Made by a program: the position numbers and the translations under genes. The notes beneath the pieces were generated by a model. That model was given only the letters and a program-made list of their open reading frames with translations. It did not search any database and was not told the origin of the DNA. A stretch of DNA of 62,275 nucleotides, counting the filler, from Platydemus manokwari (Eukaryota): NCBI GenBank assembly GCA_037951405.1. It is 5 parts of 5 records of this genome, joined end to end, with 100 filler letters (N's around TTAATTAATTAA, not from the genome) between each part and the next. Parts side by side here need not be neighbours in the genome. Positions count along the whole stretch, not along the records: positions 15,079 to 26,345 come from JBBMOY010805536.1; 4 more parts are not named here. One strand, 5' to 3'. Shown piece after piece: positions 1,725-27,700 of this stretch; position 1 is the first letter of the stretch; each line of letters starts with the position of its first letter.

Positions 1725-2029
1725 GTAATTTTGAAATTGATAATGAATTCATGATAACAAATTCATAAGCGTTTTATTTATAATTATTTAAAATATTGAA
1801 TTTATTTTATTATTTATTATTTTCATTCAATTAGCAGAGGTGAGGAACATGAGGTATAAAAATTAAAATAAATCCCTCCATAATAATAAAAGGGATTTTG
1901 AATGAATTCGAAATTGTTTTATTGAATGACTCTTTGAATTGGGATTCTGTTTGGTGGTTGTGTGGATATCGGTTTAGCTTTGACAGAATTAAGTTACAAC
2001 TGTTCAAGTTGAGCTTAAATTATATAGAA

Positions 2030-2270
2030 ATATTATTTATATCAACAAGATGAAAAATATACTTTATTTGAATATATTATATGTTTGTTATGTTAATAAC
2101 CAATAATAATTATGATATCTTGTATCATTCAATTGTCTAAAACTTTTGTAAGCTTTATAATGAAGCAAAACTTAAATGAAAAATGTATGATTACGATATT
2201 ATTATTATTTATACCAACAAGATGAAAAATCTACTTTATTTGAATATGTTATGCGTTTGATATGTTAAAA
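2030..2270. repeat. Local direct duplication of about 65 bp, roughly 170 bp apart
   Basis: ATTATTTATAyCAACAAGATGAAAAATmTACTTTATTTGAATAT...ATGTTAA occurs at ~2033 and ~2204. Confidence 0.7.
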
Positions 2271-3107
2271 AATTGCTGAATATATTATTGTAAATTACTG
2301 TTTATTATATTAAATTCTACTATATGATTTTAGTTTATTTCTTAATTCAAGAGCTTGCCAATATTATTAAAATTATTGGTTTGAAATGAGATGTTTGAGT
2401 TTCCTTGTTATTTTCTTAATGTTATTCAATTGATGCTTGATTCAACATTTCTATGAGTTATCACATTTCACTCTCATATTTCAATGCCGTTGATTACATG
2501 AGTTTTTTCTCAAATAATTTTTATTTACTGATGTTTAATTAATTTCCATTTTCCAAATTAGTCTTGTTTTTCATTGTTATAAAGTTGTTTATAATTGTTT
2601 GTTTTCCTCACACTTCTGTGAATTAGAACCCCTTTTGATTAATTTCTAAATAAAAAGTCATGTATTTCTATTACGTAGTTCCATCGAAACTATTGTGTAG
2701 AAACTTTCTTCCGAATTGTTTATGCGAAAATACAGAACTCACATCTTATGTTATTCAATTACCTTTGTTCACTGTCCGTTTATCCCTGTTTCTATTTTGT
2801 AGTCATAAAATTGTCTTTGTTCTGATTCTAATGCTTCTATGTTTTTGTGTCATTTTCAAGTGGAAGCAAGGTTTTATAATATATTTCATAATATTTATTG
2901 GGTTGCTACTGGTGAATCATAATCTTTTAAACGAAATTCAATTTTCTATTTATTCAAAAAATAGTTTTGTTTTAATTTTAAGAAATATTATTTTTTTCCG
3001 AAGTGTTTGTTTTCCTGATATATTATTAACACATAATGTTATAAAGTATTAATTAATCTGTTATTTTTTATGCTAATATAAGAATTTATCGATTATTTTT
3101 TCTTCAG

Positions 3108-3386
3108 GTTGAGAGCAAAATAATTATAAACGATTGCAATATAGGACCTCGTGAGAGACAAATAATGACATTCACTTGTAGAGCAAGTCGCCGATTCAAA
3201 TATTTTCTTCTTAATCATATTATGATTAGTTCGATGTTTTTCTTATTGACCTTTACTAGTTTTTCCATTCTTTCTGAAAATAATTTTTTTCGGCTTGGAT
3301 TATGTATGACTACTTTGTTGACAAGCGTCACTTTCAAAGTAGCTGTCAGTCAGAACTTACCGAAAATCCCTTACTTGACATATTTA
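3108..3386 (+). CDS. Exon of the same pLGIC: pre-M1, M1, M2 and M2-M3 loop
   Basis: cttcag acceptor, GTAAGT donor at 3387, 279 nt: VESKIIINDCNIGPRERQIMTFTCRASRRFKYFLLNHIMISSMFFLLTFTSFSILSENNFFRLGLCMTTLLTSVTFKVAVSQNLPKIPYLTYL. RR-YF, RL-L--T-LLT and LPKIPYLT are pLGIC hallmarks. The M3/M4 exon(s) were not found. Confidence 0.9.
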
Positions 3387-4159
3387 GTAAGTAGTTATTT
3401 CAATTATTTTCCTATCATTTTTATTTGTTAATATTTATTTATTTATTTTTAATGTCAAAATGTGTTTTTTATTTTAAATTTTAAATTTTAAATTCCTATT
3501 TTAAATTTTTAATAGGAAACAATTATTTGTCAGAATTTCGAATATTTGTTTGCTTTCTTCCTCTCACGATGCTTATTTTTATCTAAGCTTATTTAACAAT
3601 TATTTATCTAAAACTACGCGAATATTTTTAACCATTGTCGTAAACTACTACCTTAAATTGACATAAATAAATATACACCGCGAGAATTACCATGTCTATG
3701 TGATTGAACAAGTTTTCGTCATTAAAAGTAAACCATATATATGTACGATTAGCATTTATCTCAGTTGATCAGTATTGGACAAGACTCTAAATACATTAAT
3801 CGGTAAATATTTTTATAATTCATTCAAACATATAGTCGCTAGTTAAATCTGGATCTATAGCGCCATTTTGACAAATTGGGACAGTGGTAGTCATAGAGTG
3901 ATCTAAATTTATTCGGTATTGTATTCGAATTTTATTAATTTTATAATAAAATCTGTTAATATCACAGTTTTTCAAGGAACTGACGAGTTGATTTTATACC
4001 TATTCGGACGTATTTCGATTGTTTCTAGATCAATCTCTCTTTCACAGAAACATTTCAATAAATCTGACTGAAATCTTTAACATCAAAAGTAGTTGAATTT
4101 CTTGTTGATGATTGTTTGTTGATAACACTTCTTCGTTTTTTATGTTATATTCAAAAGTC

Positions 4160-4407
4160 ATAATTGTGCCCTTGATTATGAAAGTGGTATAAGTCATATA
4201 TTTCTTGTTTGGAGATATTAAGGGATTTGTATTTTAATGAATTAAAAAATATTTGTGTAATATGGAATGAAATATTTTGACAATTAATTAGCGCCGGTAA
4301 ATCAGCATTTAATATGATTCTGAAATTGATTAACATTTTTAAATGGAAATTTGGTTTTGAAAGGTTGAAACGACTTATACCACTTTCATAATCAAGGGCT
4401 CAATTAT
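4160..4407. mobile_element. MITE-like foldback element with 36-bp terminal inverted repeats
   Basis: 4160-4195 ATAATTGTGCCCTTGATTATGAAAGTGGTATAAGTC is the reverse complement of 4372-4407 with one mismatch. A partial third copy (CATAATCAAGGGCTCAATT) lies at ~4640. Superfamily not determined. Confidence 0.65.
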
Positions 4408-6303
4408 CATAGTAAAATGCATTAAATCTTTTCGAATGAAAACAATTAAATTTACTTTGTTAGGACAATTGTATAGAAAATAACTCCTCTTTCTTTATAA
4501 TTCTGATCCATTAATACTCCCTTTTATATGGTAGCTTGACTTTATTGACTGAATTGGGTTGACTGTGAGCAATTGTTGATTGTTTACGTTGATTGTTTGT
4601 GGATTTTTCTATAAATAATTATGAACTTCTGACTATAATCATAATCAAGGGCTCAATTCTCAACGTGCAAAAAATATATTTTCCAAACAAATATTCTATT
4701 ATTTTTAACCTTCTTTAATAATTCACATTTCATTTAATATAAAAAATTATTTTTTAACACATTGTAATTTTTTAAAATTTTGTAAATTATTTTTAAAATT
4801 TTTTGAGAGGTTACAGTAACTGTTGGAGCAAGATACATATTAAATATTTTTAATATAATCAATTAGAAATATTTTTTATAATTTTTTATTTAAATTTTAA
4901 ACCTCACAATATTAATGAAAATTGGCGAAACAGTGGATTTCAATAAAATATAAATTTAAAATAAAAATTTAATAAACTTTCATTCACAAGAAATATAAAA
5001 TTTATTCGATATAAATCTTCTCAACTTCTCATCAGTATTAAAAAAGCCATTTTAGAAAACTTTATGCATTTTTTACAATTCAACATTATTTCGTTTCTCT
5101 AGTGTAATTCCAGAATAATAAAAAAATTAAAATTATCCTAATGTAAAATATTCTGATATTGCCTTTTTAAAATCCTCTGAGAATAAAATTTATAACACCA
5201 TGAAGTTATTTTCTCTGACGAAATGGAAATGTTCGTTAATGGCTTCTCATTTATTTTTTTCATATCTTACAAAGCTTTCACTGGAGAATGAGTTCTCATT
5301 TTGAAATGAAATATTATTCTTATTTTAGAAATATTTTTAGTATTATTCTTATTTTTATAATTATGAAACGAAAATTCAACTTGCGGAATATATACACGCT
5401 AGATTATTGGTTGAGAACTCAAGACATATTTACAGGTTAATTTTTGCTAATCTAGTGTGTATTATTAAAATACATGTCATTCTACTGACAGCAAAATCAC
5501 ATTACCACTGTAGTTTAAATAACGTCCATAGAATATTTTATAAATTTTATTTCCGCGTTAGTTTAATTTATTTCTGAAAGGATGTTTGAACCTCCTTTGC
5601 AGGCTATCAAAAAACAACAAGAATATATAATTTTTTTAAAAATTGTATTCTTGAATTTCTCTTTGATTGGAGACAACTTTATAAATCAGAAAATGCTTCA
5701 GATTGTTAGAAATCCTCAGTTTTAGGCCAAAGAAAATGGTCTAGCCTTTATACAGAATTTTGGTCAAAATTTATGAAATTATGAGTTTTTAATTCTCAAC
5801 CATGTTTTTTACCATTTTATCTGAAATTCAATGAATAGGTTTAGAATTTCACAATTTGGTTTACAAAGTACGCTATAAGATAATACTTCTGATTGAAACT
5901 GAAAGTTCTTCCTAATATATAAAAGTTAAAAAAATAAATTTCCAATGAATATGAGCTTCACAATCTTTATTTTATTAGCTATTCTCATGATATTCTTTTC
6001 ATAGGAGTTTAAAATTTAGTTGATGCTAAAACTTTATCTGAAAAAATAGTTTTCCTATATAAAATAATAATTTTCATTTCTATAATAAGTGACAAGTCTT
6101 GAAATATTTCAAAAGTATTTCAATAAAATAGAAGGGGATACTTTTTTCATTTCTTATTCAAAATAATAAAAAGAATAAACGTGTTAACTGCATTGGGAAC
6201 CATTTTTGTGAGTACTTTTCAGAATCTATTTACAGAATAAATATTTGAGATTTTTAAATATTTTTAATATTTCAAATACACGCTTTATTATCATATACAG
6301 ATT

Positions 6304-6428
6304 TTCACATATATTCACATATATTCACATATATTCACATATATTCACATATATTCACACATATTCACATATATTTACATATCCTCACATATATTACATA
6401 TATTCACATATATATTCATATATTCACA
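6304..6428 (+). repeat. 10-bp tandem repeat (CACATATATT)n
   Basis: About 12 near-perfect units visible directly; this explains the spurious SHIFTYIH ORF. Confidence 0.95.
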
Positions 6429-6699
6429 GTAGCAAACTCAATTAAATAGATTTTAATATCATTTTAACAACGTGAATGACCAGATTATCAGAATGAACTT
6501 TGTGTTTTTTAAACTTGACAATTCAATTAACGACCTCTAAATATTTAAGAAAATAACAAGAATTCGGTAATCAAATAATTGATAATTCATAGAGATAACT
6601 AAACCATCATTCTATATTTCACGCATTGATAAATTTGGACCCGCTTCTGTTTTATCTGGGGTAAGTTTTCACAATTGATAATTTTTATTATGTTTTCTA

Positions 6700-8930
6700 A
6701 TAATAAAATTTTTGACTATCTCGATAGATAGGAAGACAGACTAATCCTCAATGAATTGGAAATCATAATTCAAACGGTTTCACCTTTCCAAGCCAAGAGC
6801 TAGGTTAAAAGATGGCTTGAGGTTTGGATTCCCTTATAGACGATATCTGAACGGATATCTGGAAAGAAGAAATATCACAATGATTCTTATCAATTTAATG
6901 AGAGAACCTCTCAAAACCATCAATTTTTTCCAAAATAGACCTTTAAATAGAGGCCAGGAGCAGATCCGTACAGGGGTCACATGGTCCATAAACTACCAAT
7001 TCCTTAATTCCCTATGTCAATCTTCAAAATACAAAGGGGTTTCAATAAGCAATGTCTCAATATAACTTCTGGAATAACACTTCTTCTATAGAAATCTCCA
7101 ATAAAATAAGGCAACATTAAACAAAATGCGAAATCAAATTCCAGCCTAAGATCAAATATAAAGCAAACCAATTCTCTACTCCTATGCTGGTGCATCGCAT
7201 GCTTTGAAACTACTCCAACTGAACCCGAAAATCTTGATTCAAAATAAATAGTCTTCAACAGCCTCTTTGCAATTGATTTCAAAGCTCCATGCATATAAGC
7301 TACCAAACTATCACAAATAGACTCCGCACAATCGAGTACTAGCTTAATTCAATCATAGCGCCTCTAGTCCAACTCAGTTGTTTGTTCATTGATGGTTAAA
7401 TATTAACCTACAGCTTCAAAAATGATCCTTCTAAATTAATTCTAGTTGAAACATCCTTATATATGTCTCTAATCGTTAACCCTTGTCCTAAGGAAAAAAG
7501 ATTTTCCATCACATCACTAGTTACAAAGCACTCCCATCAATTCCAGAATATTAATCTTCAGTCTAAATTTGCTGTCTAATACTACATTTGAACCAGCACA
7601 ACGCTGAGAAAAACCTATCCTTCATTAAGCCACAACATACAGTCACAATCGACAACCGAGACTTCGAAACTTTCTACCCTTATTTCCATTCTTCATAAAG
7701 AGTTGCCTTCTAGCTCACATGAAAACTACTGCGACAGAGTCGTTTTAAAATCATAGTACATTGACCTTGCAAACCTCTTCCAATCATATGGGTATAAAGC
7801 TTAGTGGATAAAATAAGAAAGTCCTCTCCAGAACCTGCAGCCAATAAAAAAAACCAAGTGCTACAAAATCCATTATAATCGAACTTCCAAAGCAAATAAA
7901 CTTAAATAATCACGGACTTTTACAAGTCAACAGGTTTTCGATTAAGCGACAGATTCTACAACATTTAATGCCAAAATTCTTCCAGAACTCTGTGAGAATC
8001 TCAATCGGATTATAAAGATATTCTCAGACCAAACCATCGCATTCACTAGACAACCTGCATTCACCTGATTATAAATGCCCGTAAGTGTGGTTACCATAAC
8101 AAAAAACCATATCATAAAATATACCACTTCTCAATAGACAACCCAGGCAAATTCTCTAAAACAATGCACTATATCAACGAATGACTGAAAATAAAAAAAA
8201 CTAGACAGACTAATGGACTGCTTTTTAACCACTGATCGATGACAAAAGTCTTTGGAAAACTTACAATTGCACCGGAACTTTCGATTTTCATACATCAGAC
8301 TCGCAACAACCTGCTCTATTACATGCCATACTTCATAAAGGCCACCAATTCCATCTTCTGCTAACGCTGCACTACAAGCCTGCATATCTTTATTCATTGC
8401 CCGGCTGCTCCTGAATTAACTTCTAGACCACGTGTAATTATCCTTGATCATTTAGATAAATATCTGCAATCGCTTTGCTTCGATAGGCACATTGATAACC
8501 CATCACCGGAATCTTCAAACAGATAACGACCATCTTTGATGGTCAGACTCAAAAGCAAAATCCAATCTGACGTGAATACAACTTCAAAAATCACAGATTA
8601 CTCAATAATTAACAAAATAGAACTGAAATCTGCAGGAAAACCTGTTCTATCACAAATCTCGACGTTACCTGCAACGGTGTGCTCGGTCTAGGAATACCCA
8701 CAATGACAATGTTATATCCAATATAGGGCTGGACAAAAAACAAATAACTTCATCTCTGGCTTCCTCATAACCACACTACTTAGTGATGCATTTGTCATTT
8801 AAAAACTCGCACTGATCAGAGAAAGACGAAGATTGTCTTATCTGATCGAATCCTAACTCTCCTAGACTGGCCAACCAAACTATACCTTCAATAATAATAC
8901 TGATCGGTTATGTTGTACAGGAAATGAGCA
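6700..8930 (+). mobile_element. Heavily decayed Ty3/gypsy-like pol remnant
   Basis: GC-richer block with stop-ridden frames. Scattered motifs: FAIDFK (~7266, RT FSKIDL-like), HMGIK..DKIRK (~7785, integrase zinc-finger-like), DGQTQKQN (~8538, integrase DGQTER-like), IQYRAGQK (~8716, RNase H C-terminal-like). Boundaries approximate. Confidence 0.45.
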
Positions 8931-11900
8931 GAATACAACTGAAGGAAATTCTACACAAAAATAAGTAATGAAAATCGTTTTTCAAACTATTTGAGACGGC
9001 ATGAGGACTAGTGTGAGAATAAAATATTGGTTTGTGTGAGAAATAAATATTGGTTTTTTTCGAAATACAAATCGTCTCTCGTGCCTTCGGAGAAATGTTT
9101 TTGATTCCAAATAGGTTTTCATTAATTTTTCATTGAAATTTCATTAATTTAAACATCCAGGTCAGTAATTAATTGATTAATGTGCCCAAAAACTAGAATC
9201 ATCATTTATAACTCTGCCTTCACAGCGTTTTAATTTATTCGGTTTTTAAATTTATTTTTGCAATTCTTCCATTACAGAAATCCATCAAAAACCGGCTTTC
9301 AAAAATCTCAATCGATCTTGGAACAAAATAAATTACAAATATCAAAAACGACAAAGAAACCAGAATATAAATAATCGATATTTAAGCAATAAATCTAGCT
9401 GTTGGAGTATTCAGGTTGAAGTGCCTCTTTAAGGAACGACGTCATAGACAAGTAGTTTCTTTTGGAATTATTGGTTCTTCGATGGAAATCAAAACAAGAT
9501 TTATTTTTAATTAAATCAAGAATATCGAAAATAGAGGCACAAAATATTTGGAACGCACAATGACGATGTTTGTTATTCTGTGAACAAAGAGATTATTGAT
9601 TAACTTTTTTTTGAAATATCATCTAAGAATCAAATATTCGTCTCTGTAGGACATCACTAATCGAATTGTAACATCCAGATTCTTGTGTTTCTCTTGGATA
9701 TTGAAAATCATTTTTGAAAAAATTTCTGCTTTGATTTACCGATAGCCATTAAAAAACACTCATTGCAGAAATGTTAAGATTTGGTCTACTTTTTGGAGAA
9801 TAATTATTGGATTTATTTTTATTAACCTAATAGATCTCAAACCAGGAAACAATTCATTCCGACGTTTGAATCAAATATTCTCAAATTATTTCGATAGCTG
9901 AGCTAAAATAAAAATTTATTCAGCCGACGAAATTCATAAAATATTAATTATATTAGTAATTTAATAATTAATCAATACAAAATCAATATTAAATCAATAT
10001 TAAATCAATATCAAAATATGTTTTAATTTATTTTTAATTTTTAATTAGTAATTTAAATTTTTATTTAACTTTTTTTAATATTCAAGAGAAGGCGGAGTAT
10101 TTCATTTCCTTTAACAGCCCAAAAAATTTAAAATGATCAAAAAACCTAATAAATATGTTACTGTCGGTATTAGCATCAATGACATAATTTTCAAAACTTT
10201 TTATTCATCCGACTTTCTGTGTAAAGAAATTTTAAAATTTTATAATTTAATATATCCGTAATCAATTTATCGATAAATCAATTGCTGCACATATCAACAA
10301 TCGAATCAAGTCCTCAATGTTTCAAGTATGGTAAACTGCTTCACTCTAAGTTTTCCTCACAGTTTCCTAACAAGTGTCATTGACTAATGGAAAAAAAATC
10401 TTTTATATATAATCAAATACTTGATAAGCTCGAGTATGAAGGAAATGTCAATCAATACAATGACAGTTTTGCAACCCGAAAGAAACCTAATATTCTTTTT
10501 TTCTTTGAATCCATAATCTGGTTTGAGCTGATTATTTTCTCCTTCGTTGAAAATCGATTATGGTTTACATCAAATAATTTGTTGAGCCAAAATTAATGAA
10601 TGTAAATCAGCATTTTCGAATTATTAAATCTCTGAATTTTGTTGGAAAATAATTTTTATTGGTGCAATGCAAATAATAAAAACGATTTATTTCGTCAAAT
10701 TTATTTTAGATTTCTTGAAAATCAATAATATTCAAGTTATAAAACTTTTGATAATAATATCAATATTAGATTGATCAATAATAGAATAGATCAAAATCTT
10801 AAACATGCCAACAATAAAAAGTAAAACATTAAGATGACCATATTTTGGAATTCTTCATTGACAGGTACTATATTATGACAAATAAATATATGTAGTTTTA
10901 ATAATAGTCGAATATAAAGTACGTCTTATAAATCTATATTTAATTATATTGAAGAGCCAATGAAATTAAACATTAAAATATAAATAAAAGTATAAATAAA
11001 TAATTAAGTAATCATGGTAATAATCATAAACAAATTTAATATAATTCAGATAAAGGCAACTAAAATATTTTTAAAATATGGCATTCAGAATTATTGACCT
11101 TTCAAGAGAAAGAAAAATATAAATCTAATAAAATGGGTAGAAATTTGATGACTGACATTTAAAACCAAAAATGGATTGGTTTATTACACAGTGATGTAAA
11201 TCGCTACAAATGAAAGGCAATCACAATGAGATTTCTATTATCAAAATAGAAGTCCACAATCGAAGAAAATTAATCAAGGGGAACATGAAAATTAACAAGG
11301 AGTTACGTTTGAGAGAATAATGTTTCAGTCAAATGTTCCAGAGTCTATGATTGGTTAGAAACCAGAATTGGAGAAGAGATAATTTACTTTCTTCTACAAT
11401 ACGGTGCAGAATAGTCGCTTGCACGCTCTAGTTACTATAAACACGTAACCTATCGTAGAAGTATCTAAAGTTAGCAATAGTTCTTCGACTAGTGGCCCAA
11501 ATTCTTGCGTGAGCAATATTAACAGATGAATTGGGAGCAAGAATCGAACATGAAGTTTCACGAAAATCAAAGATGTGTGTAATTCCACTACTTTGCGTTA
11601 TGTGAACATTTCTTTGGATATCCTGTATATATAAGACTCTGTCTTTACCATTCAAAGTTAATAATTCAAATCGTTAGACAAAATTCATCACTTCATATAA
11701 TATTATTCTATATATATTATTCTAAAAGTTGCTTGTGAATAATGCTCATAAATAATTTTATCGATTATATATAAGAATATTTCCTTACTGTCCTTGCATT
11801 TTGCTATTTACTTACTTTATGGTGTATTAAAATGGGGGCCAAATATGAGAATTTTAAAGATCAAAACGAGCCAATAAGAACTGAGACGAAATCCAAATTT

Positions 11901-15078: not shown

Positions 15079-18049
15079 AATCAACAAACCATTTTTCTTA
15101 TGGCCAGTGACATCTGTTACAAAAACCGGAAAGGAATTACCGACACACCTGGTATATTAACTCGCTACTGTCACAAATTCCAATCATAAAATACCTGCTT
15201 AGATTCATATCAATATTAAAGTACCAATCACTATTTATACTGAGTCGGTTTATTATCAAGCTAAATTTTACTTAATTTGTTTCGTTATTTTTACTTAATA
15301 TTATTCCTAATTAGCACAATTAACAGACTCCACCATTTAGTGTCCCATATATTTTTTCCACAACTATTAAATCTAGCATTTTTTTTCTTTTCAGTTTCTG
15401 TTTGCAAACAGGTTCTTTGAATATTTCAATGAATCTTTGATTGGAATCAATCAATTGATTCTTTATTTCCACAAGACATTCTCTTGCAATAAAAAATTAA
15501 CAAATAATAGTTGTTCTTTTGATTTTTAAAGCTGTCTATGATGGATCGTCTCAACGGCTGAAAAATGGTAAAATACTGACCAATCAAATGTCATATTTAA
15601 ATATTTTAAAAAATATATTAATAATTTTTTTTCAGTTTGTAAAGAATTCAATAAAAATGTGACAATACGGTATCCATCAATATTCTAACGTACAAATGGA
15701 TAATTAATTAGTTTAGTATTATTGAGATTAATGATACAAGTATTATATTGATATCAAAAAATATATGTACCGGTAAATTCGTCCCATTAAATATAAATTC
15801 TCCAAAATTTTTTATTGTTGACCCATCTTGATTTTTCGTTATTTCGTTACGATTTATATTTTCCAATGATATATTTCCTCTAAATATTTCGTTGTATTTA
15901 CTAAATATTATTATTTTCAAATCTATCTTTTAAATAAATATCCTGAAACTCACCCGAACATTCTTAAAGTTATTCTAATTAGACATCCATCGTACGAGTG
16001 GTAACAATCATTATTAAAGCTACCTCGCAAATCGAAATTTTCTAATTTTATGATTATTTTAAAATCATGATAGGATTCACAGTTTTTGGCCTGAATATAA
16101 ATTATTTTAGATAACATTTCATATAATTTTTAAATACCAGAAAAATTAAAATGCTGATTATCCATATGACCATAATTAATTCAAATCTGATCGAATCGCG
16201 TTACTATTTCATTATTATTATGATTTTTATGATTTATAAATCATGTGATTACGAGATGTGATCTACAGTGATTTTATAATTTCAACGACATTTATTTATA
16301 ATATTATGATTATAATTATAATAATAATTATTATATTAAATATTTTGAGTTAATGTTATTCCATCACCTTTATGTGCAATGACTTTTTAATGAAACCAAC
16401 AAATTTTGGAATTTACTCTTTATATTTGGAAATTAAGATATTAAATAAATTATAATTTTAATATTATCTTTGTTTCTAGATTATTTCGCTAAATTATAAA
16501 TGTATATTAAATGTTTATAAGTGTATTAAAGAACTGAAATTCAATTTCATATATTTATCCACAACAAATAATCAACTCTACAAACACATCACACCATGTT
16601 ACAAGTTCCCTAAGCTCAAGCCAAGAGTAATAGAGATTATCGTAAAGAAATGAGGTCTGCACTCACAAGACAAAAACACATACAATTTTGGAACAAAACC
16701 ATTGACATTTTTGATCCTTGATCCAACTTCATATATGTAGTCTATTTTTATGTGTGTTAACTGATGTACTGTTTCTTGATTTTCATTAGATATTGAAACT
16801 TTGTTACTTGTTTGTTGGTATCCATCAATTTACTACTCACAATCCTATCGGTTATTTGAAAGCCTATTGTTTACTGTGTATGTTTGATTAATTCTTAAAC
16901 ATTTCAGGATTTATCAAAAACCCTACGTAATAATAAGATTAATATTTAGTATCATTAAAGTTTAAAAAATTATAATTGAATGGTCATTTTCGTTCTTCAA
17001 ATATAATATTTTAATTTTCTAAAGTCTCTAAAATAATATGAAATAATAGTGTGTGTGTGTGTGTGTAGACAGATAGATAGAGAGATAAATAGATAGAGAA
17101 CAGAGAGAGCAGAGATTATTTGTATTTAGTCGCTCTCCTTATTTGAGAAATAAAATTTTGAAAATATGACTTGCTTAGTCTGTGAGAGTCGACATAAAAA
17201 AGCCTTCGCAATTTCCATGAATTTCGGCATAATAGTAAAATTTGAAAGTCAATTACTGATTATATTATTATTTAAGAAATATTATTAAGAAATAATATTA
17301 TTTATCATATTATTTAAGAAAATTTGAACTTATTAGTATTTATTACTGTTATTAGTAATACAATTATTTTATATTTTATCGTGATATATATACTTTAATA
17401 TCATACGATATATATAAGTTTATATTGATTGAGGTCGAAAATTTGCAAAATACAAATACAATTTCCGATCATGTTATTGACCCTTAAGCTGATCAAGGTT
17501 TCGCAATGTTCGGTTGAACTAAAAACTTCACCATCTCAATGCACACATATTATACTTGTAAAAATTAATAATAATTGTTCTAGATAAAAGACATTTATTC
17601 TTTAAATTATTAAATTGACCTGGTTATGGAAAATTATACACAAATCAATTGATCAAATATGATCAAATGGTTTATCGTGTGTCACACAATATCTTTAAGA
17701 CTTTTTAAAATTTGATTTGAAGATTTAATCAAATTATATTTGGAAATATATTTCGAGGTTTCACCACTATTCATGCATATACAAATACATTTCTCGTTGA
17801 CTTATGTAAAATTCTTACATTTATAGCAGCACAGAGAACATTAAATAAACCAATATAAGCATCAATAATCAAGAAACAAAACGCAAGAGAAATAAAATAA
17901 TAGAATATTAGACACAAAATTTTTGATAAGAAGATCCAAACTAAAACAACCAACAAAACTTCATTGGTCCATACGTAGGCTGTTTCCAGTTTCCACGGTT
18001 TTTACCTTATGGAAAGAAGGTATCTGAAGCCAACTGCATGTATCTAATA

Positions 18050-18277
18050 CAGGAGTCTCCAAAGTACGGCCCGCCAAGCTTACTATGAAACACACGAACA
18101 TTATGACAAAAATCTTGCTATAGGTCACGGTTGTCTGATGAACATTTAAATGACTTATTAATAATTTCAACTACTCATTTTGAACCACAATTTTTGTAAA
18201 CCTATCATAGTTTTGGCCCTCCAAATTTTAAAAAATCAGCAATGTAGCCCTTTGCTGAAAAAGTTTGGAGACCCCTG
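18050..18277. mobile_element. Non-autonomous hAT (Buster/Charlie-type) MITE, 228 bp
   Basis: Left end CAGGAGTCTCCAAAGTACGGCCCGC, right end AGTTTGGAGACCCCTG (16-bp TIR, 2 mismatches). The 8-bp flanks ATCTAATA / ATATATGT both fit nnnTAnnn but are diverged. Confidence 0.8.
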
Positions 18278-19342
18278 ATATATGTGATTATTAATTTCTT
18301 TGTTGATTAGGTCGAATCACAGTAGTAGATTATTTGATGATGGTCAGTAAATTTAATTTCATATTCATATTCAACATCAAGTTTTTAATTCACATTTCGT
18401 TTTGGTTGCTTATAACGAACGTCCGATATTTAAACTGCAGAAATTGAAATAGTTAATTATTGATGAATCTACGAGATGCTAAGATCAACTCTGTGCTAAT
18501 AAATTAAGCTACACATATATTAGGTATTAAAATTATTGACATTTTAAATAAAGAATATTGTTCACGGAACAGTAGTCATAGTGGTTAAGTTCAAAACAGT
18601 TACGATACGAATATAGTAAAATTTTACTATTTTAGTATGTGCGCTGTGGACAGAAGCTTGAGAGACCGAACGGATACAGTGACCTCAATTCATTTAAATT
18701 CAGCTATCAAGTTTCATCGGATATAAATAAAGTCAAAACAAACTGTGGGAAACAACCCAGAGACCATTAAAATGTTATATATGAAACAAAACAAGTTTGA
18801 CAATTTTTTGAATTATAAACAATAATATTGGTAACAAAATTTACTAACAATAAATTAAATTTTTACAAAAAAGATATTGGAAAAATCAATATAAAAATCA
18901 TAATTTTGCGAAATTGTTTCAATAAATAAATTTTGCAATAATAACAAAGATAAAACAATTATAAGGCTCATTTTTTTCAAAAACAGACAGGGAGACAAAA
19001 ATGAAAGCAGATGTTTCTAAATATAGAATGCTAAATATAGAACATTCATCAAAAATTAACAGTTAAATATGCTAACAAAGCATTACAAATATAGAAACTA
19101 ACTGATAAAGATCACAAACAAATGTGATTCATATAACAGTATTGTTGGCTTCTTATGGGTTTTATAAAAATGTTATGAATAAGAAATTTATAAATAGAAT
19201 ACCAACAAATATAAATAAAATTATTATTATTATTATAAGGCGATAACTGACTCCAAATAGACTAGTAGGTGCTACTTAATAAGACATTATTAAAATTGTT
19301 ACAATTATAAATTAATAAATAATAAAATTAATAGACGGCATG

Positions 19343-19871
19343 CCGTATTTTCCCTATTATAAGCGGTCGCTTATATTATTTTCCGTCGAGAAAAGTGGAG
19401 TACCGCTTATGTTATTTTACCGATTACTTAAAAATCATAATATATTTTTATTATAATATTTCCAATATTTAAAACAGTTTCAGGTATTTTAATCAAATAC
19501 AGTTAAATCGTCCTCTTCTGCTACATCTTCAAAGAAAATAAGATTTTGAACACTCTCAATTAATTCCTGTGAATTAAGTTTATCTTTTATTAGTGGTCCT
19601 AATCTCTCATTTTTTGCTAAGAAGCTTTCTTCGAATGAAGCCGACTTGTCTAGATAGACAGCCTTCAAAGCTTTTTTGACACAGTTATCATTAATTTAAG
19701 CTCAGGCATTACTAACCCACTTGGCTATTTCTTGTAGATTTGGTTTTACAAAGTTCCCCTTTTCATTTCTCATAATTTTCTTCTCAACGTATATAGTATT
19801 ACCAATTTATACAGTATTTATATTTACTACCGCTTATATTCGGAGGGCCGCTTATAATAGGAAAAACACGG
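19343..19871 (-). mobile_element. Internally deleted pogo/Tc2-type DNA transposon
   Basis: 24-bp TIRs CCGTATTTTCCCTATTATAAGCGG (19343-19366) and CCGCTTATAATAGGAAAAACACGG (19848-19871), 22/24 match, TA on the right flank, subterminal CGCTTATA repeats. The minus strand keeps the transposase C-terminus RNEKGNFVKPNLQEIAKWVSNA*A*INDNCVKKALK...EEDDLTVFD*. Confidence 0.85.
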
Positions 19872-20699
19872 TAATAATTATTTAAATGAAGCAACAACTC
19901 GGATTTTAATTACATGATTTTTATAGGATTCTATTGTTTCTATAGAGATAAATTTTATTCTTATGTGCTTTCGTCACAAGAATCCTTGTTGAATAATATA
20001 TTGAGGATTGGGGCTAGATATTCCAGCAACCCATCTTGTTTAGATAAATTTGCGTTACAAAGTTAGATTTGATTAACTGAATGATTGGACTGGTGTCAGT
20101 CCATTTAAAGTTAAGTTAATTAAAATTCCATACATTCATTTCGACATTAATAATTATAAAAGCCATTTTAACAAATCAAAATTACTTGATAGTATAAATC
20201 AATATAGATGACAAAATAATAATAATATTTTTTCAGTTAATTTCTCCTTGTTTATATACACTTATTCACTTTCAATAAATCGATTTTCTGTTCATTAGAA
20301 TCTGTTCCTCACAAATAAAAAAATCCATTTATAATTTTCTGTAGATTTCTTTAAAAATACTTCTTTGTAAATTTCGAACTGATTAGACAATAGAAGCAAT
20401 GACGTTAGTTTTTCTGAAATTGTCGTATTATAGCAATTTAAGTTTTTGCAACATTGGGTGCGGTACTGCTATTTTTTGGATATATTTATACGTTTTATCA
20501 TTTCTTTGTTTGGTTATACTTCTATTTTTGTACATATTAATTTAAAATTTATTATTTTCCGATACTATTTTTTGTTGTTTAATTCCATTTTTTCAAATTA
20601 GAATTTGATCATCACTATTTTTATTTTCGGATGTATTTTTAGGTTTTTCTTACAAAAGTTTTGTATAAAGTATTGTTTTTGTCTGTGGTGGTGTCTCGT

Positions 20700-21050
20700 A
20701 CCCCACAGTATATAAGCAGTGAACAAGAGTCACATTTCGCATAAATCTTTTCATGTAAAGTTACCTAAACACGTTCTTAAACTTCATTATGATTTGAAAA
20801 TTTGTTACAACCACATTATCGCTAGAGACGATGCATAAAATGTAGGAGGTAAGTCAAGATAATTACAGGATTTTTATATAAACTTTTGGTTAACGCAATG
20901 TCTAGTGCTGCTCATCTCGTCTGCATGCGAGTATTAGAATCGATTGAGGCGAAAGAACATCAAATGTTAAGATTGGGTCATCAGAATTGAGGAGAACCGA
21001 TTAGTCAGGGACATTAGTCTCAGGTGTTAAAGATAATAATAATAATAATT
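20700..21050 (+). mobile_element. Possible 3' end of a non-LTR retrotransposon ending in an (AAT)n tail
   Basis: GC-richer stop-interrupted stretch that ends abruptly in GATAATAATAATAATAAT at ~21032-21049; no diagnostic motif. Confidence 0.3.
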
Positions 21051-21967
21051 ATTATTATTATTATTAAACAAGAACCCCAATTTTAAAACAAATAGAATTA
21101 CAAACAAAAGATATTTAAAATAATAATTACGCCAATGCAACTGAAAATGGTAGTTCAGTTCCCATTGGTAATTCTTTAAACTAAAGATGAATTTATTTTC
21201 TACCAAGCAGGAAAATTAATGAAATACGTAATGTCATATGAAAGCCCTAATTGGTACATCTTATAGCAAATTAATAATTCATTTCAATTCATGATTATAC
21301 ATCCCACCATTTATTAAAATTGGTAAAACACGAATTCGCCAATTATTTAATTCAAGGGAATTACTATAATAAGTCAATAATTTGTTCAACAAGTTATTTC
21401 ATCATCTAAGTGCCTAGTAACGGATAAAATTAAATAGCATGTGACTGTTTTTTAAGTTACTGGTAGTATCAGCGATCTTGTTCACTCAAGAGTGATTTGG
21501 TTTAAATAAATAATTTCAACAACTTGAAAAATATCATTCTACTAAGTGTAAGTCATGAAAATAAACTATTACGAATATTTTAAACCATTTATATTGCTTT
21601 ATTTTAAGTTCAATTTTATTTATTTTACCGGTACATGGTTTAATTAATCAAAAAGGAAGTTATTCCAGTGATTTGATTTTTATTATTAGTCATTATAAGT
21701 TTTTATTCTTGATAATAATATTTATAAGAATCACATTAATGATAATAAATAATATTACTGAAGAAAATGATTATTATAATAATTTCTAAATTAATAAATT
21801 TCAATTTAATATTAAAAAATTCAAAACATCAAACATAAACATTTCTGCATTCATTTATTATTAAAATTATCAGATATTTTCGATGTGTTTGAACCAATTA
21901 ATAGTCAAGATCAGTCAATCAAAATAAATCAGATTCAAATGTTAAGAAATTAACCAGAAAGATCTCC

Positions 21968-23426
21968 CTAGAAGTGATATTCACCTATTTCTTCTAAATT
22001 ATCATTAGCGGCTTCTTCATAATCTTTCTCTAAGGAACCGATATCTTCCCTAGCATCCAAAAATTCACCCTCTTCCATTCCTTCACCAATATACCAATGG
22101 ACGAATGCCCTTCTACGATACATCAGATCGAATTGCTTATCTAATCTACGCCAAGCTTCAACAATAGCTGTTGTATTACTAAGCATACATGCGGCTCTGT
22201 TGGTTTTACCCAAATGGCTTCCTTGGATAATTGAAGGGGCCTGTGGATTTACACCAACTTTAAAACCTGTCGGACACCAATCAACAAATTGAATTGATCT
22301 TCTCGCTTGGACAGCTGAGATGGCAGCATTAACATCTTTTGGAGTAACATCACCTCTATAAAGCATACAGCATGACATATATTTACCGCTTCGTGAATCA
22401 CATTTTACCATTTGATTTGATGATTCGAAGCAAGAATTGGTTATATCATACACGCTATACTGTTGATGTTCAATAGCATGTTCTGACATCAAAGGAGCGT
22501 AAGACGTCATCGGAAAATGAATTCTTGGAAATGGAACCAAATTGGTTTGAAATTCAGTTAAGTCGATATTTAGTGAACCATCAAATCTCAAAGAAAGAGT
22601 AATCGAACTAACAATTTGACTAATCAGCCGATTGAGATTTTCGTAAATTGGCCGGTCGATATTTAAACTCTTTTTACAGATATCATAAATAGCCTCATTA
22701 TCGACTATGAATGCACAGTCAGAGTGATCTATTGTTGAGTGAGTTGTTAGAATTGAATTGTAAGGTTCCACAACCGATGTTGAAATTCTTGGCGCTGGAT
22801 AGACAGAAAACTGCAATTTCGATTTCTTTCCATAATCAGTACTCAAATGTTCCATGAGTAAAGAAGTGAATCCTGATCCCGTTCCTCCTCCAAATGAATG
22901 GAAAATTAAAAATCCTTGCAAACCACTGCAGTGATCGGTTAATTTTCGAATTTGATCCAATACTGGATCGATCATTTCTCTACCAATCGAATAATGTCCT
23001 CTGGCGAAATTATTGGCTGCATCTTCTTTCCCGGCAAGTAATTGATCTGGATGGAATAATCTTCGGTACTTTCCCGATCTTATTTGATCTTCATTAAGAT
23101 CGATTAAATAAACAGAATAGTTTTCAATTATCAAGCCTACCAATGACAGTCGATTCCAAATCGACAAAAATTGCCCTCGGTACGTGTTTACCGGCTTCTG
23201 TTTCGCTGAAGAAAGTATCAAAAGGATCTTCAGATTTTCCCAAATTCTTTGAGTTGGGTATATGGCCGTCTGATTCGATCCCGTGCTCCAGGCAGTATAA
23301 TTCCCAACAACTGTTACCCATCTGGATTCCAGCTTGTCCAACATGAACACTAATGCATTCTCTCTGGAATAAAAATTCGAAATTAAAACCTATATCAAAC
23401 ATCTTTAGAGTTAAAATTCCAACCAT
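21968..23426 (-). CDS. TUBA: Alpha-tubulin, divergent isoform, 3 exons, about 448 aa
   Basis: Exons 23426-23424 (ATG only), 23363-23141 ([12 protein letters not shown]...ESTVI) and 23088-21968, with GT-AG introns of 60 and 52 nt at the conserved alpha-tubulin positions. Motifs [38 protein letters not shown]-terminus EEIGEYHF*. Confidence 0.97.
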
Positions 23427-24285
23427 TTCTAATAATTGAAATAATGAATCTAAGACAATGATATCTGATTTATATATTTTATCATTCTTGATTATAAAAT
23501 ATAATTCAATATAATAAAATAAATCTAAAAGAACTTTGCCGCAAACAATTTTGAAAACAATGCCAACTTATCAACCGACTAGAGATTGTACAAATCGATA
23601 TGTTATACCATTATTGATAATAACCGAGGTAATGCTGATATCGAATTATAATAATCGAGTTATACCAATCTCGGACGAGAGATAATGCTAATAGGAGTTC
23701 ATATCATTTCGTATTGATATAACAAAAAGACTTTCTCAAAGCCATATTGAAATTATTTTTGTGATTTTAAGGAATGATAAAAGTTTTCTCAATTAATTTT
23801 GAATAAAAACTATTTGACGATTTGCCAGCGCTTAATCCTCTGGTTTCAAGTTTCTGTCATTTTATGACATTATTGTTTTGTGGATTTTAAATATAATTAA
23901 TTATTTATATTTTCAGGTCAATGACGGGCGTGTGGATTTAAAAATTTTGATTAAAAAACTACTTGATAAATTAATATTGTTATATAAGCTAGTATTTTAT
24001 TATATAAATACAGAATTAAAACAGGATTAAACCATAATATTTATTCAATGGAAACAAATTATTTAAAATATAAAATTGATTTTTACAGGACAGCCTAAAA
24101 CATGACAATATAAGGTAAAATAAAATATCGTTTACGTACTTTATATAATAAATTTTTAAATTTGATTAGAGAAATTTTTGTGTAATTTTGTATAATATTT
24201 TTAACTATTAACACTGCTTGATAATATGTACTTTATATAATAATTATAATTAATTATAAAATAATTATTATTTTTAATTTATTAT

Positions 24286-24328
24286 CAGATTGAGCTACTA
24301 TCATCCATCATACACGTAGCTCAATCTG
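24286..24328. repeat. Perfect 13-bp hairpin at the start of the hammerhead repeat
   Basis: CAGATTGAGCTAC (24286-24298) / GTAGCTCAATCTG (24316-24328), 17-nt loop. The stem is conserved in copy B while the loop diverges. Confidence 0.9.
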
Positions 24329-24542
24329 TCATCCATTATGAATTGGATTTTTCATTCTCCGAAGGGATTTATCCTGACGGCACTAATGCGTCGAAATTTA
24401 TTGCCTGTCAGCGTTTTAAAATCCCGTCGAGTTCTGCTTGAATTTCTAGCCGCAATATAGTAATCCTGTGTTTTGGGTTTCTTGATGAATTGGTCTCAAA
24501 ATTATTAAACAAACTGATAGTTATTTTCTAGATTTCCTTTAA

Positions 24543-24598
24543 TCCTATCTGCCTTTGATCCGGGGCACTAATGAGGCCCATGGAAGGCCGAAATAGGA
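24543..24598 (+). ncRNA. Type III hammerhead ribozyme fold 1 (core G5A variant, probably inactive)
   Basis: Stem III TCCTAT/ATAGGA, AUC cleavage triplet (C at 24549), stem I TGCCTT-tgatcc-GGGGCA, core CTAATGA (CUGAUGA with G5A), stem II GGCC-catggaa-GGCC, GAAA. Confidence 0.85.
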
Positions 24599-24667
24599 CT
24601 CTATCATCATCAGAAGACCACAATCATGATCATTATAGCCATCGTTCTTGAAGGTTCCAAGGGATCT

Positions 24668-24723
24668 TCCTATATATCTCTGAACCGGGGTACTGATGAG
24701 ACCTATGAAAGGCCGAAATAAGA
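24668..24723 (+). ncRNA. Type III hammerhead ribozyme fold 2 (intact catalytic core)
   Basis: Stem III TCCTAT/ATAAGA (1 mismatch), AUA cleavage triplet (A at 24674), stem I TATCTC-tgaacc-GGGGTA, core CTGATGA (24693-24699), stem II GACCT-atgaa-AGGCC (1 mismatch), GAAA (24715-24718). Confidence 0.88.
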
Positions 24724-27700
24724 CCTATTTTTCAACAAAAGGTAGTTTATTTATTAGATGGTGACCACTAACCAATATCAAAAGAAATTAATATGTTTAA
24801 ATAATTGTTCTGAAATACATAAATTGGTGTCGGGACTTTTCAGTCTTCTTCGATGCGTGTTTTATAAAATATTAGCGACTTTCATCCCGACCGCGAATAT
24901 GGGTTCGATTATGAGAAAGTCTATGACATAGGAGTGTTGGTTACAGAAACACCCTAAAATAATAATAAAATAATTACTTGAAAATTTTTTAAAGAGTTTT
25001 CTAAATGCTCCAGGCCTTCCTATAAATAGCAACAACAAAATAAATATAAAATAATTAATAAATCCTAAATATAGAAAAGATAAATAACTATATATATATA
25101 TATACATAGAATAAGAAAATAGGAGTTTCTAAAAATATGATATAAAAAATACCGAAATAAATAAAAAAACACAATAGGATAAAAGGATAAATATATTAGT
25201 GTAAAAAGAAATGAATGAATCATAAAGAACGCCCATTATAAGTCGATTCAAAAATCAGCACATAAAATATCAGCTCATAATTCATTATTAAGCACAATTT
25301 TAGATGATTTGAAAAAATAACAACCAGAAAATATTGATTTCATACTCATTGAAACAAAATTGTCAAATCCAAAGCATATTCTGCGAGAATATAATTAAGA
25401 AACCCACACAGCCGCTATTCTTAAATCAAGTGGAATTACTGTATCTAAATATAATCGTCCCACCTGAAACAAAAGAAGCAAACTAGCAAAACAAGACAGA
25501 AGTCGAGATATTTATAACCACAATAAAAGTAAAATTCTACTAATTTTATAGTAAAGAATATATAATGAATTTAATAAAGAATATTATCATCACCAGTGTC
25601 TTGGGCCCCGCCAACCACAATCAAATTAACTTCTAAGTTCATCTAATTAAACCTTGTTCTCTTTGTAGTTACAGGGCTATTATGTCTCAACTATCATCAA
25701 TAAATCTTTGGACCTTGCAGCCGTCCGCACAAGAATCTTATAACATTACAATAAAAATCAATAGAGAGTAATTAAAACTCCTGGATATTTGTAAAAATGG
25801 CTTATTAATTACCGTATTCTACTCGCCATAAATTATTTCATTTTAGAGCATATATATAATCTTATCTTATTTTGTCTATTTATATTTAATCTTATCTACA
25901 TCATTTTAACACACTGCCTTCTGGAGTCAGGCATTAAGAGTTCGTCATTAATTACAATTAAAAACCTTCTAAAGTTTGGAACAAGATAAAATCAAACGAA
26001 GGTATGTAAGATGACTAAAATACAGAAAACCTGTAGAGAAGATTTAGATAGGATGAAAAGAAGATATAGAGAAAATAAAGAAAAAATAGAAATTTTCATT
26101 TAGATAAATATAGAGTTCATTTCAGAGATAATTAGGAGTACATAGATGATCAGACATTTTAAAAAAGGGGGTGTGTGAGGATCTTAAATATATAAATCAG
26201 AGTCGTGATTTTTCAGTTTGTTTTCCATGTATGTTTTATAATATAGTAGCGGATTATGACGGGGTTTCGATATTTATTAGGCTGAGTCAAAAGTTATTCA
26301 TGTTTTTTAGTTGTTTAAAGTTTTTGTTTTACCAAATCATTTAAANNNNNNNNNNNNNNNNNNNNNNNNNNNNNNNNNNNNNNNNNNNNTTAATTAATTA
26401 ANNNNNNNNNNNNNNNNNNNNNNNNNNNNNNNNNNNNNNNNNNNNATTTGTGTTATTATCTAAAAATTTATTCAGATTGTATTTATTATATTCAGATTGT
26501 AATTATTATATAAATATATCTTTAACGAATTCGATTGTTATCAAAGCATAGTTACATCGTAGTTGTTTTCGAAGCATAGTTACACAGCACCTTTGGAGTC
26601 AGGTGTTTAAAAGTATAAGCTCATAAATTGGGAAAACTCAGAGATCAATAATAAAATAATAAACCTTATCAACCCCAACAATTCCTATTTAATTTATCTG
26701 ATCAAAATTGTCTAATTTATTTTATGTACAAGTTTTTATAAATAAACATATATTTTTATATAATTTTCAAAGATTATACAACTCACAAATATTAATTAAT
26801 TTTTACAAGTGATCAATAAATCATAATCAAAAGAGTTGTAATCAATAAAATGTCAAGAATATCCACAAAAATGTAAAATCAACTAATTGCTCACAAATGT
26901 TCCATTTTGACGAATGCTGATGGTCATTGGGATGAAAGCAGTATTAGGAATTTTCACTGGCTCCTAAGCGTCTAAATCTACGTTCCAGGTCTTCTTTCCT
27001 CATGTTTTCTATTGTCAGTTAGTTTCTATTTTGGTGTCATTGACCTTTTAAATTCTATTTGGAATGAGTTTGTTGTTTGGGTTGTGACGTTTTTACCTCT
27101 GCTATTGTCTGCAAAGGTTTCAACTTATATATCTTGCTCTTCAATACACAACATGATTGTGGTGGGAGTCTTCTCTTCTTCGCTCTCTTCACTATCTGAG
27201 TAGAGCACTATCCGGTCTGTGGTTTCCCAACAGAATGATAGCTCAAGAGGAATAACTCAAATTAATTGTCATAAGACTGAGCCAATTGTCTTCAGAAATA
27301 TGTTTAATCATGAGCTGTAAGCATAATTAACACTAGGATTATTCTAAACAATTCGAAGAAATAATAATTGTAAATTGATAATTTCAGCACTTAATAGATT
27401 CTGCAAAAACTATATTCACAGCCGATAGAGTTCGAATGAACTGAAATAACTTGATTTAAATGATATTTTAGTAAACTGAGTAAAAATAATAAAAGTGTTT
27501 TGAATAGAATTAGAACTTACCCCCAAAGGATTGGTAAACAGAGACTAATAGCTAATTAGATTCTTTCTATATATTAACCCATATTTAGAGTTCAATAATC
27601 ATCTGATGCATACCAACAAATGGCAATAAACACCAATATTAGCAAAAGGTACGGAAAATGTAAGAAAAAATTGTTAACAATCTGACATGTGTCCTACTTT

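Follow-up and report, generated by a model that had tools for sequence, protein, structure and literature searches.

The DNA examined here (the window) is a stretch of 62,275 nucleotides (nt), filler included, from the genome assembly of Platydemus manokwari (GCA_037951405.1), in which five parts of five records are joined end to end. The analysis concerns the 11.3-kilobase (kb) piece at positions 15,079 to 26,345 (JBBMOY010805536.1), with the element region read at 24100–25000, where two motifs of the type III hammerhead ribozyme (HHR) lie in tandem on the plus strand inside a non-coding, high-copy repeat. The motifs were first proposed in a reading of the sequence alone (the sequence-only reading), which regarded them as a candidate retrozyme-like system that could release an RNA of about 125 nt.

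The first unit occupies 24543–24598 (56 nt) and is found both by a covariance model and by a fixed-geometry descriptor, which are described below. Helix III of this unit is formed by 24543–24548 with 24593–24598 (6/6 pairs) and helix I by 24550–24555 with 24562–24567 (6/6 pairs), the latter closed by a 6-nt loop 1, UGAUCC, at 24556–24561. The core box at 24568–24574 carries one core change and leads into helix II (24575–24579 with 24585–24589, 4/5 pairs), which is capped by a 5-nt loop 2, AUGGA, at 24580–24584, and the GAA at 24590–24592 lies 3′ of helix II. The predicted cleavage site falls between C24549 (H17 of the triplet AUC) and U24550. The second unit occupies 24668–24723 (56 nt), is recovered by the same two methods, and follows the same plan; its CUGAUGA core is intact, and its loops 1 and 2 read UGAACC and AUGAA, respectively. 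The descriptor counts no core changes in it and pairing of 6/6, 4/5, and 5/6 in helices I, II, and III, respectively. Cleavage of this unit is predicted between A24674 (H17 of the triplet AUA) and U24675. Both units thus have an N-U-H triplet, in which U16.1 pairs with A15.1, and GAAAU after helix II, and in both the cleavage site aligns with column 7 of the covariance model. The shared plan consists of a 6-base-pair (bp) helix III, A-U-H, a 6-bp helix I with the loop UGAHCC, CUGAUGA, a 5-bp helix II with the loop AUGGA or AUGAA, and GAAA. Helices I and II are capped by loops of 6 and 5 nt while helix III is open, which is the type III topology. The topology, the coordinates, and the cleavage sites at 24549 and 24674 given in the sequence-only reading are confirmed by an end-to-end, indel-free alignment of both units to the model.

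The geometry of this alignment places 125 nt between the two cleavage sites (24550–24674), which is the RNA that an intact member of the family is predicted to release. The units are direct repeats 125 nt apart, with 74% identity over 74 ungapped nt; self-BLAST of the piece gives 80.6% identity over 62 nt (E 1.4e-10). The same self-comparison indicates that the duplicated part is the ribozyme only (62–74 nt), as the 69-nt spacer at 24599–24667 is similar to nothing else in the piece and matches no Rfam family on either strand. The differences between the units include a structure-preserving double change at the second pair of helix I, which is G24551-C24566 in unit 1 and A24676-U24691 in unit 2, so that the covariation noted earlier at this pair is real. 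At helix I pairs 3 and 6, moreover, one unit has a G.U where the other has a Watson-Crick pair. As observed earlier, U is the first letter of loop 1 and A the last of loop 2 in both units, and the proposed UCC/GGA complementarity between the loops is present in unit 1. Apart from the AUGAA of unit 2, where AUGGA is usual, the loop sequences agree with those in five independent hammerheads that share this architecture.

Evidence for hammerhead ancestry

The reference hammerheads come from scans whose patterns were taken from the two units, namely from their core and helix II. These scans returned unrelated hammerheads in the metagenome contigs L002 and L006 and in the phage (IMG/VR) contigs L010/L013, L012, and L014/L015, all of which have the same 56-nt architecture and align to one another and to the two units without any indel. 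In the alignment of the five outside hammerheads (A1), 11 of the 17 pairs are changed on both sides and 92.9% of the cells are paired; in 500 shuffles, this percentage, the number of both-side changes, and the covariation score were never reached. The covariance model R1 was built from these five outside sequences alone, with the two units excluded. Searched against the 11.3-kb piece, R1 matches 24543–24598 with 61.9 bits (rough E-value 3e-22) and 24668–24723 with 54.0 bits (rough E-value 4e-19), in each case over model positions 1–56 and with no indels, and the next best match in the piece scores 11.6 bits. When the two units are added to A1, 92.4% of the cells pair and helix I pairs in 100% of the cells. 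Because the scans required a set core, set outer pairs of helix II, and GAAA, and in later rounds the loop ends as well, part of the R1 score is circular. The patterns imposed neither helix I nor its length, and they left the loop 1 sequence, helix III, and the cleavage triplet free, as well as, in the first scan, the sequence of loop 2. The descriptor, which specifies a fixed geometry and allows one core change and three mispairs, is free of the circularity of R1; its only matches in the piece are the two units, and it finds no match in 300 shuffles of the 11.3-kb piece or in 3000 shuffles of the 662-nt element.

A search against Rfam had been suggested as a check on the ribozyme call. Rfam cmscan reports no hammerhead at the gathering score in the piece, none at E ≤ 10 in 24200–24800, and no other ribozyme family on either strand of 24200–24800; scans of 23800–24300 and 24700–26345 at permissive E-values yield noise only and no hammerhead. 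The gathering cut-off of RF00008 (clan CL00010) is 48.5 bits. As a control, the two perfect hammerheads of L006 score 46.5 and 41.0 bits against this family, below the cut-off, and for L002 no match is returned. The 56-nt architecture is one to which Rfam is insensitive, and its silence on the two units is uninformative because perfect relatives also fail the cut-off.

These results bear on the simplest rival explanation, namely that an AT-rich repeat with CUGAUGA and GAAA boxes resembles a hammerhead by chance and has no hammerhead ancestry. In line with it are the absence of an Rfam match, the core substitution in unit 1, and the folding predictions, since the hammerhead fold is not the minimum-free-energy (MFE) fold of either unit as it stands in the window, and unit 2 as it stands folds no better than its shuffles. 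The MFE mismatch is not taken as decisive because more than one fold is common among natural hammerheads and because this copy is mutated. The R1 scores, the descriptor matches that shuffles do not produce, and the pairing of the helices after addition of the two units all argue against chance, as does the finding, described in the next section, that most deviations of this copy from the family majority damage the ribozyme. Chance resemblance is considered extremely unlikely, and it is very probable that the repeat is genuinely hammerhead-derived.

The repeat family and decay of the present copy

Statements about the family rest on summary tables in which the contigs of one public run (X1, Logan contigs) were aligned to the piece at 80% likeness. 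The summed contig depth in these tables is not a copy number, and the claim is limited to many copies, tens to hundreds. Run X1 contains this exact locus, with contigs over 23450–24123, 24576–24930, and 25021–26106 that show no differences at a depth of about 11–13. Contig depth and loose ends delimit a dispersed, non-coding, high-copy repeat whose copy at this locus lies at 23935–24881 on the plus strand; the strongly repeated core spans about 24219–24881, the 5′ limit is fuzzy (23935–24219), and the 3′ end is at about 24881. Summed depth is 2000–9400 over 24226–24904, with 56–102 distinct contigs per position, compared to 13–18 at 23547–23837, which is 150–700 times above the unique flanks. 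The proposal that the hammerheads lie inside a repeated element is borne out by this contrast. On the 5′ side the depth rises in steps, from 245 to 492 to 1274 across 23935–24225.

The ends of the repeat were examined through the loose ends of the contigs. Behind 24881 the loose ends agree at 0.5, as expected when different copies have different flanks, and because the sequence past 24881 differs between copies, this marks the arrangement as dispersed rather than satellite. The loose end before 24218 shows an agreement of 0.74 and resembles the window, which indicates that the element continues upstream. Other contigs span 24271–24631 (left flank and unit 1) and 24398–24755 (left flank and both units) at about 83% identity, and since they join the left flank and the units, the ribozyme pair is part of a longer element that is repeated whole. 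A partial second copy of the 3′ end of the repeat, without ribozyme units, is found at 26158–26256 on the plus strand, where local alignment matches about 24796–24885; the depth over 26166–26262 is 2611, and the loose end behind 26256 has an agreement of 0.47. The contig alignment also contains two joints, one from 24657 back to 24543 with 10 diverged letters between, and one from 24550 to 24679 that skips 128 letters. These joints suggest variation between copies in how many units they have or in how the units are ordered.

Pattern scans of viral, metagenome, and bacterial/archaeal genome collections recovered no further copy of the repeat family, and in the bacterial/archaeal collection no hammerhead of this architecture was found by pattern scan either. 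A protein search with the 59-codon open frame that runs across the ribozyme pair gave no candidates.

While the sequence-only reading called the two folds complete, this was overstated. The core of unit 1 reads CUAAUGA, in which the invariant G5 is an A at 24570, and the fifth pair of its helix II is a C.A mismatch. In unit 2, one A.C mismatch in helix II (24701/24713) and another in helix III (24670/24721) are predicted to weaken the ribozyme. Mutagenesis has established that G5 is essential for hammerhead catalysis. Because G5 is an A at 24570, unit 1 of this copy is predicted to be dead and is almost certainly inactive. The copy is likely to be non-functional as a pair, and release of the 125-nt RNA at this locus is unlikely because unit 1 lacks G5.

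The letters found in most other copies point to a less damaged family. At 24570 the majority has G where the window has A (63 contigs, 1802 of 1960 depth), which restores the catalytic G5. At 24721, where the majority has G instead of A (59 contigs, 1628 of 1931 depth), the A.C mismatch in helix III of unit 2 becomes a G-C pair. Helix III gains a seventh pair, G-C, in unit 1 through G in place of A at 24542 (71 contigs) and in unit 2 through G in place of T at 24667 (58 contigs), and A in place of G at 24563 (61 contigs) and at 24690 (69 contigs) converts a helix I G.U to A-U. One change goes in the opposite direction, as T in place of C at 24552 (56 contigs) turns a C-G pair in helix I of unit 1 into U.G. 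With the majority letters, the hammerhead fold of unit 2 is almost the MFE fold, with a free energy of −11.9 kcal/mol against −12.1 kcal/mol for the MFE fold, whereas the value is −2.7 kcal/mol with the letters of the window. Since most other copies lack the core defect of unit 1 and the helix III mismatch of unit 2, the copy in the window is a decayed member of the family, and the source element had two better tandem ribozymes.

Type of element and possible modes of spread

The region 23900–24960 was examined for the hallmarks of known mobile elements. It contains no repeat of the size of a long terminal repeat (LTR), as only 62–74 nt are repeated compared to about 350 bp in a plant LTR retrozyme. 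There is no tRNA primer-binding site (PBS) with two or fewer mismatches, no purine run of at least 10 nt, no tRNA-, 5S-, or 7SL-like head, and no convincing RNA polymerase III A or B box in the same region. Terminal inverted repeats are absent as well, and the ends are not Helitron-like on inspection. The 11.3-kb piece holds no open reading frame (ORF) for a reverse transcriptase (RT), an endonuclease, or a GIY-YIG protein, an alpha-tubulin gene being the sole gene there, and because the piece has no RT or endonuclease ORF the element is predicted to be non-autonomous. With regard to head-to-tail units, there are two at 125-nt spacing, only the 62-nt ribozyme part is repeated, and unit 1 is incomplete in this copy. 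The element is outside the plant LTR retrozymes, the animal type I retrozymes, and the Penelope pseudo-LTRs, as it lacks a defining feature of each; the repeat looks like a small new relative of retrozymes.

Two further features of the element region were noted. A palindrome at 24286–24328, near the 5′ side of the high-copy core, has perfect 10-bp arms (ATTGAGCTAC / GTAGCTCAAT) and a 19-nt loop. A third, older unit was considered at 24365–24400, 193 nt upstream of unit 1, where GGCACTAATG is followed by GAAA. This stretch resembles the 3′ half of helix I with a CTAATG box and GAAA, but it was rejected, as it has no helix II, gives no R1 match at E ≤ 10, and has A as the family majority at the would-be C3 (24383).

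The preferred reading of the locus, to which a probability of roughly 55% is assigned, is that homologous type III hammerheads lie in a decayed copy of a high-copy repeat and that intact copies undergo retrozyme-like processing. First, RNA transcribed from an intact copy would self-cleave immediately 3′ of the sites that correspond to 24549 and 24674, as anticipated from hammerhead chemistry and the retrozyme literature (PMC4918200, PMC7229834). These cuts would free a 125-nt RNA with 5′-OH and 2′,3′-cyclic phosphate ends. In the circular fold of the joined 125-mer, the helix III strands 24593–24598 and 24668–24673 pair with each other. The re-formed helix III would hold the ends of the 125-nt RNA together in a geometry that favours ligation to a circle, which either a host RNA ligase or the ribozyme itself could close. 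Finally, an RT supplied in trans would copy RNA into DNA, with either the small RNA or the whole element of about 0.7–0.9 kb as template. That intact copies make a 125-nt excised or circular RNA is given slightly less than an even chance. The stronger proposal that the intact members form an undescribed class of animal mini-retrozymes, with monomer-cleaving type III hammerheads and circles of about 125 nt that spread by reverse transcription in trans, is speculative and rather improbable; if true, these would be the smallest ribozyme-bearing circles known and would link a phage/viroid-like type III lineage to animal mobile DNA.

Several points weigh against the preferred reading. In addition to the silence of Rfam and the partial circularity of the R1 score, the majority letters were drawn from 40 of 290 variant rows, and position 24701 (the helix II mismatch of unit 2) is not among them. 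The joints in the contig alignment could reflect the aligner switching between two units that are 80% identical. The 125-nt unit is shorter than the reported retrozyme units (150–450 nt). The flanks are co-repeated and deeper than the ribozyme pair, which a model with a 125-nt circle as the sole mobile unit leaves unexplained.

This last point is accounted for better by a rival explanation, in which the hammerheads are real but serve as processing signals or are passengers of a longer (about 0.7–0.95 kb) non-autonomous retroelement that is moved whole by target-primed reverse transcription, in the manner of short interspersed nuclear elements (SINEs) or Penelope-derived elements; the pair would have arisen by local duplication, and a small circle would have no role in mobility. 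The flanks at 24226–24516 and 24808–24904 that are co-repeated with the pair are contiguous with it in other copies. The sharp 3′ end at 24881 and again at 26256, followed by copy-specific flanks, together with the stepwise depth over 23935–24322 and a second copy of the last ~100 nt only, is what 5′-truncated insertions would leave, a pattern that would be expected of target-primed reverse transcription, as gauged from one locus and the summary tables. Hammerheads in SINE-like and Penelope-like elements are, moreover, established (PMC7229834, PMC8557442), but the known ones are type I. There is also no poly(A) or microsatellite tail at 24881, and neither the Pol III-type head or boxes nor the RT or GIY-YIG ORF that such an element might show was found in the regions searched above. 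Two competent ribozymes in the middle of the transcript would cut the template into three, so that their retention is less well explained. This alternative is considered somewhat unlikely. The idea of a retrozyme-like system in the sequence-only reading stands in part: a type III pair in a repeat fits it, whereas the co-repeated flanks of an element of about 0.66–0.95 kb are unlike a simple tandem retrozyme.

Related hammerheads and neighbouring features

The literature agrees with the earlier statement that animal hammerheads are mostly type I and that type III is typical of plants and viroids, as in animals both the hammerheads of repeats and those of non-LTR retrozymes belong to type I, in units of 150–450 bp, and plant LTR retrozymes are type III (PMC7229834, PMC7761336, 10.64898/2026.07.22.740005), and Penelope-like elements carry minimal type I motifs (PMC8557442). 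The novelty is smaller than had been assumed, as work in preparation on insect "elements with type III HHRs" is mentioned by de la Pena (PMC7761336), and isolated long-helix type III motifs have been published from termite and dipteran genomes (PMC7936874).

The plant LTR retrozymes (Cervera, Urbina and de la Pena 2016, PMC4918200) likewise have type III hammerheads as a dimeric direct repeat in a non-coding, non-autonomous repeat, and in both cases the stretch from one cleavage site to the other is predicted to be excised. In contrast to the present element, they have LTRs of ~350 bp, a PBS, and a polypurine tract (PPT), none of which is present here, where the direct repeat is ~62–74 nt; their cleavage sites are spaced by 600–1000 nt and their GC content is above 55%, whereas the spacing here is 125 nt, the element is AT-rich, and the host is apparently no plant. 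A 4-bp target-site duplication is another mark of the plant LTR retrozymes; at the present locus the 5′ limit of the element is known only as a range. The metazoan non-LTR retrozymes and satellites (Cervera and de la Pena 2020, PMC7229834; Li et al. 2026, 10.64898/2026.07.22.740005) share with the repeat an AT-rich composition, many copies, the lack of LTR, PBS, and PPT, and a proposed small circular RNA intermediate; they consist of short head-to-tail units with one hammerhead each, an arrangement that the two ribozyme units here may resemble. Their hammerheads are type I, in many of which helix III is weak and dimeric folding is required, and their 150–450-bp units often form long arrays, whereas the present hammerheads are type III with a stable helix III of 6–7 bp and 125-nt spacing, and the two units lie inside a longer dispersed element. 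The Penelope-like pseudo-LTRs differ in that a minimal type I motif stands beside an RT/GIY-YIG ORF, compared to type III and no such ORF in the piece. The type III hammerheads of termites and dipterans and of HDV-like circular RNAs (de la Pena et al. 2021, PMC7936874) are similar in being type III motifs in invertebrate DNA in which loop 1–loop 2 complementarity is possible; they are isolated and have very long helices I and II with stable pseudoknots, in contrast to the classical 6-bp and 5-bp helices of the repeat family described here.

By architecture and loops, the nearest hammerheads are those of the phage contigs L010, L012, and L014 and of L006. The phage and metagenome set (L010/L013, L012, L014/L015, L002, and L006) shares the 56-nt architecture with its 6-bp helix I/UGAHCC and 5-bp helix II/AYGGA, the core, an A-U-H or G-U-H triplet, a loop 1 that starts with U and ends in CC, and a loop 2 that ends in A; a GG in loop 2 is common to all except unit 2, which has GA. 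The difference is one of context, as these are single motifs or an ambisense circle, while here a tandem pair with both units damaged lies in a high-copy repeat of a eukaryotic nuclear genome. This similarity raises the possibility that the pair is the endogenized cDNA of a viroid-like or satellite circular RNA, or was gained horizontally from such an agent or from a phage, and was then amplified in a host repeat. The identity of loop 2 in the minus-strand hammerhead of L006 (AUGGA) to that of unit 1 would fit such an origin. However, only one polarity bears the ribozyme, neither strand matches any further ribozyme family, the resemblance to L006 and to the phage loci is confined to the 56-nt motif, and the family is old and diverged, with ~83% identity between copies. 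The shared architecture may instead reflect the constraints of one tertiary-contact solution. An origin of this kind is considered highly improbable.

The reference contigs have features of their own. L006 (1–1596) has a terminal redundancy of 123 nt at 100% identity, which implies a 1473-nt circle; it carries type III hammerheads on both strands (501–555 plus, 845–902 minus, the pair that served as the Rfam control) and no ORF above 68 amino acids, and is a viroid-like circular element. On the minus strand of the metagenome contig L001, at 144–339, a type III hammerhead (144–196) lies ~90 nt from a Twister-P5 ribozyme (284–339), which scores 40.3 bits against a gathering score of 37.6. In the phage contigs L010 (2898–2953), L013, L014 (1411–1466), and L015, the hammerhead directly follows a GC-rich hairpin, GGCCTTCGGGCC or CCCCTTCGGGGG.

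The alpha-tubulin gene of the piece lies at 21968–23426 on the minus strand and has at least one intron, with exon 1 ending near 23127 and a large exon at about 23110–21971. Its best matches are metazoan, at 73–75% identity across many animal phyla and with nothing closer; because it is only 73–75% identical to animal alpha-tubulins, it is either a divergent paralogue or from a poorly sampled lineage. The ribozyme pair is ~1.1 kb upstream of this gene on the opposite strand, and a role of the motif for the gene was dropped, as the motif belongs to a many-copy family. At the other end of the piece, the last 83 bases (26263–26345) have a summed depth of ~600,000 in run X1 compared to ~13 for unique sequence, which identifies an extremely abundant repeat or satellite; this is probably the reason that the assembly piece ends there.

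For annotation, these results mean that RF00008 misses a whole hammerhead architecture, as perfect members fall below its cut-off. Paired classical type III hammerheads in a high-copy repeat of an apparently animal genome would blur the division between type I in animals and type III in plants and viroids, and would offer a very small (125-nt) candidate for a self-processing RNA. They would also provide an independent case for understanding how ribozyme-bearing repeats arise and move, and whether they share ancestry with phage or viroid-like hammerheads.

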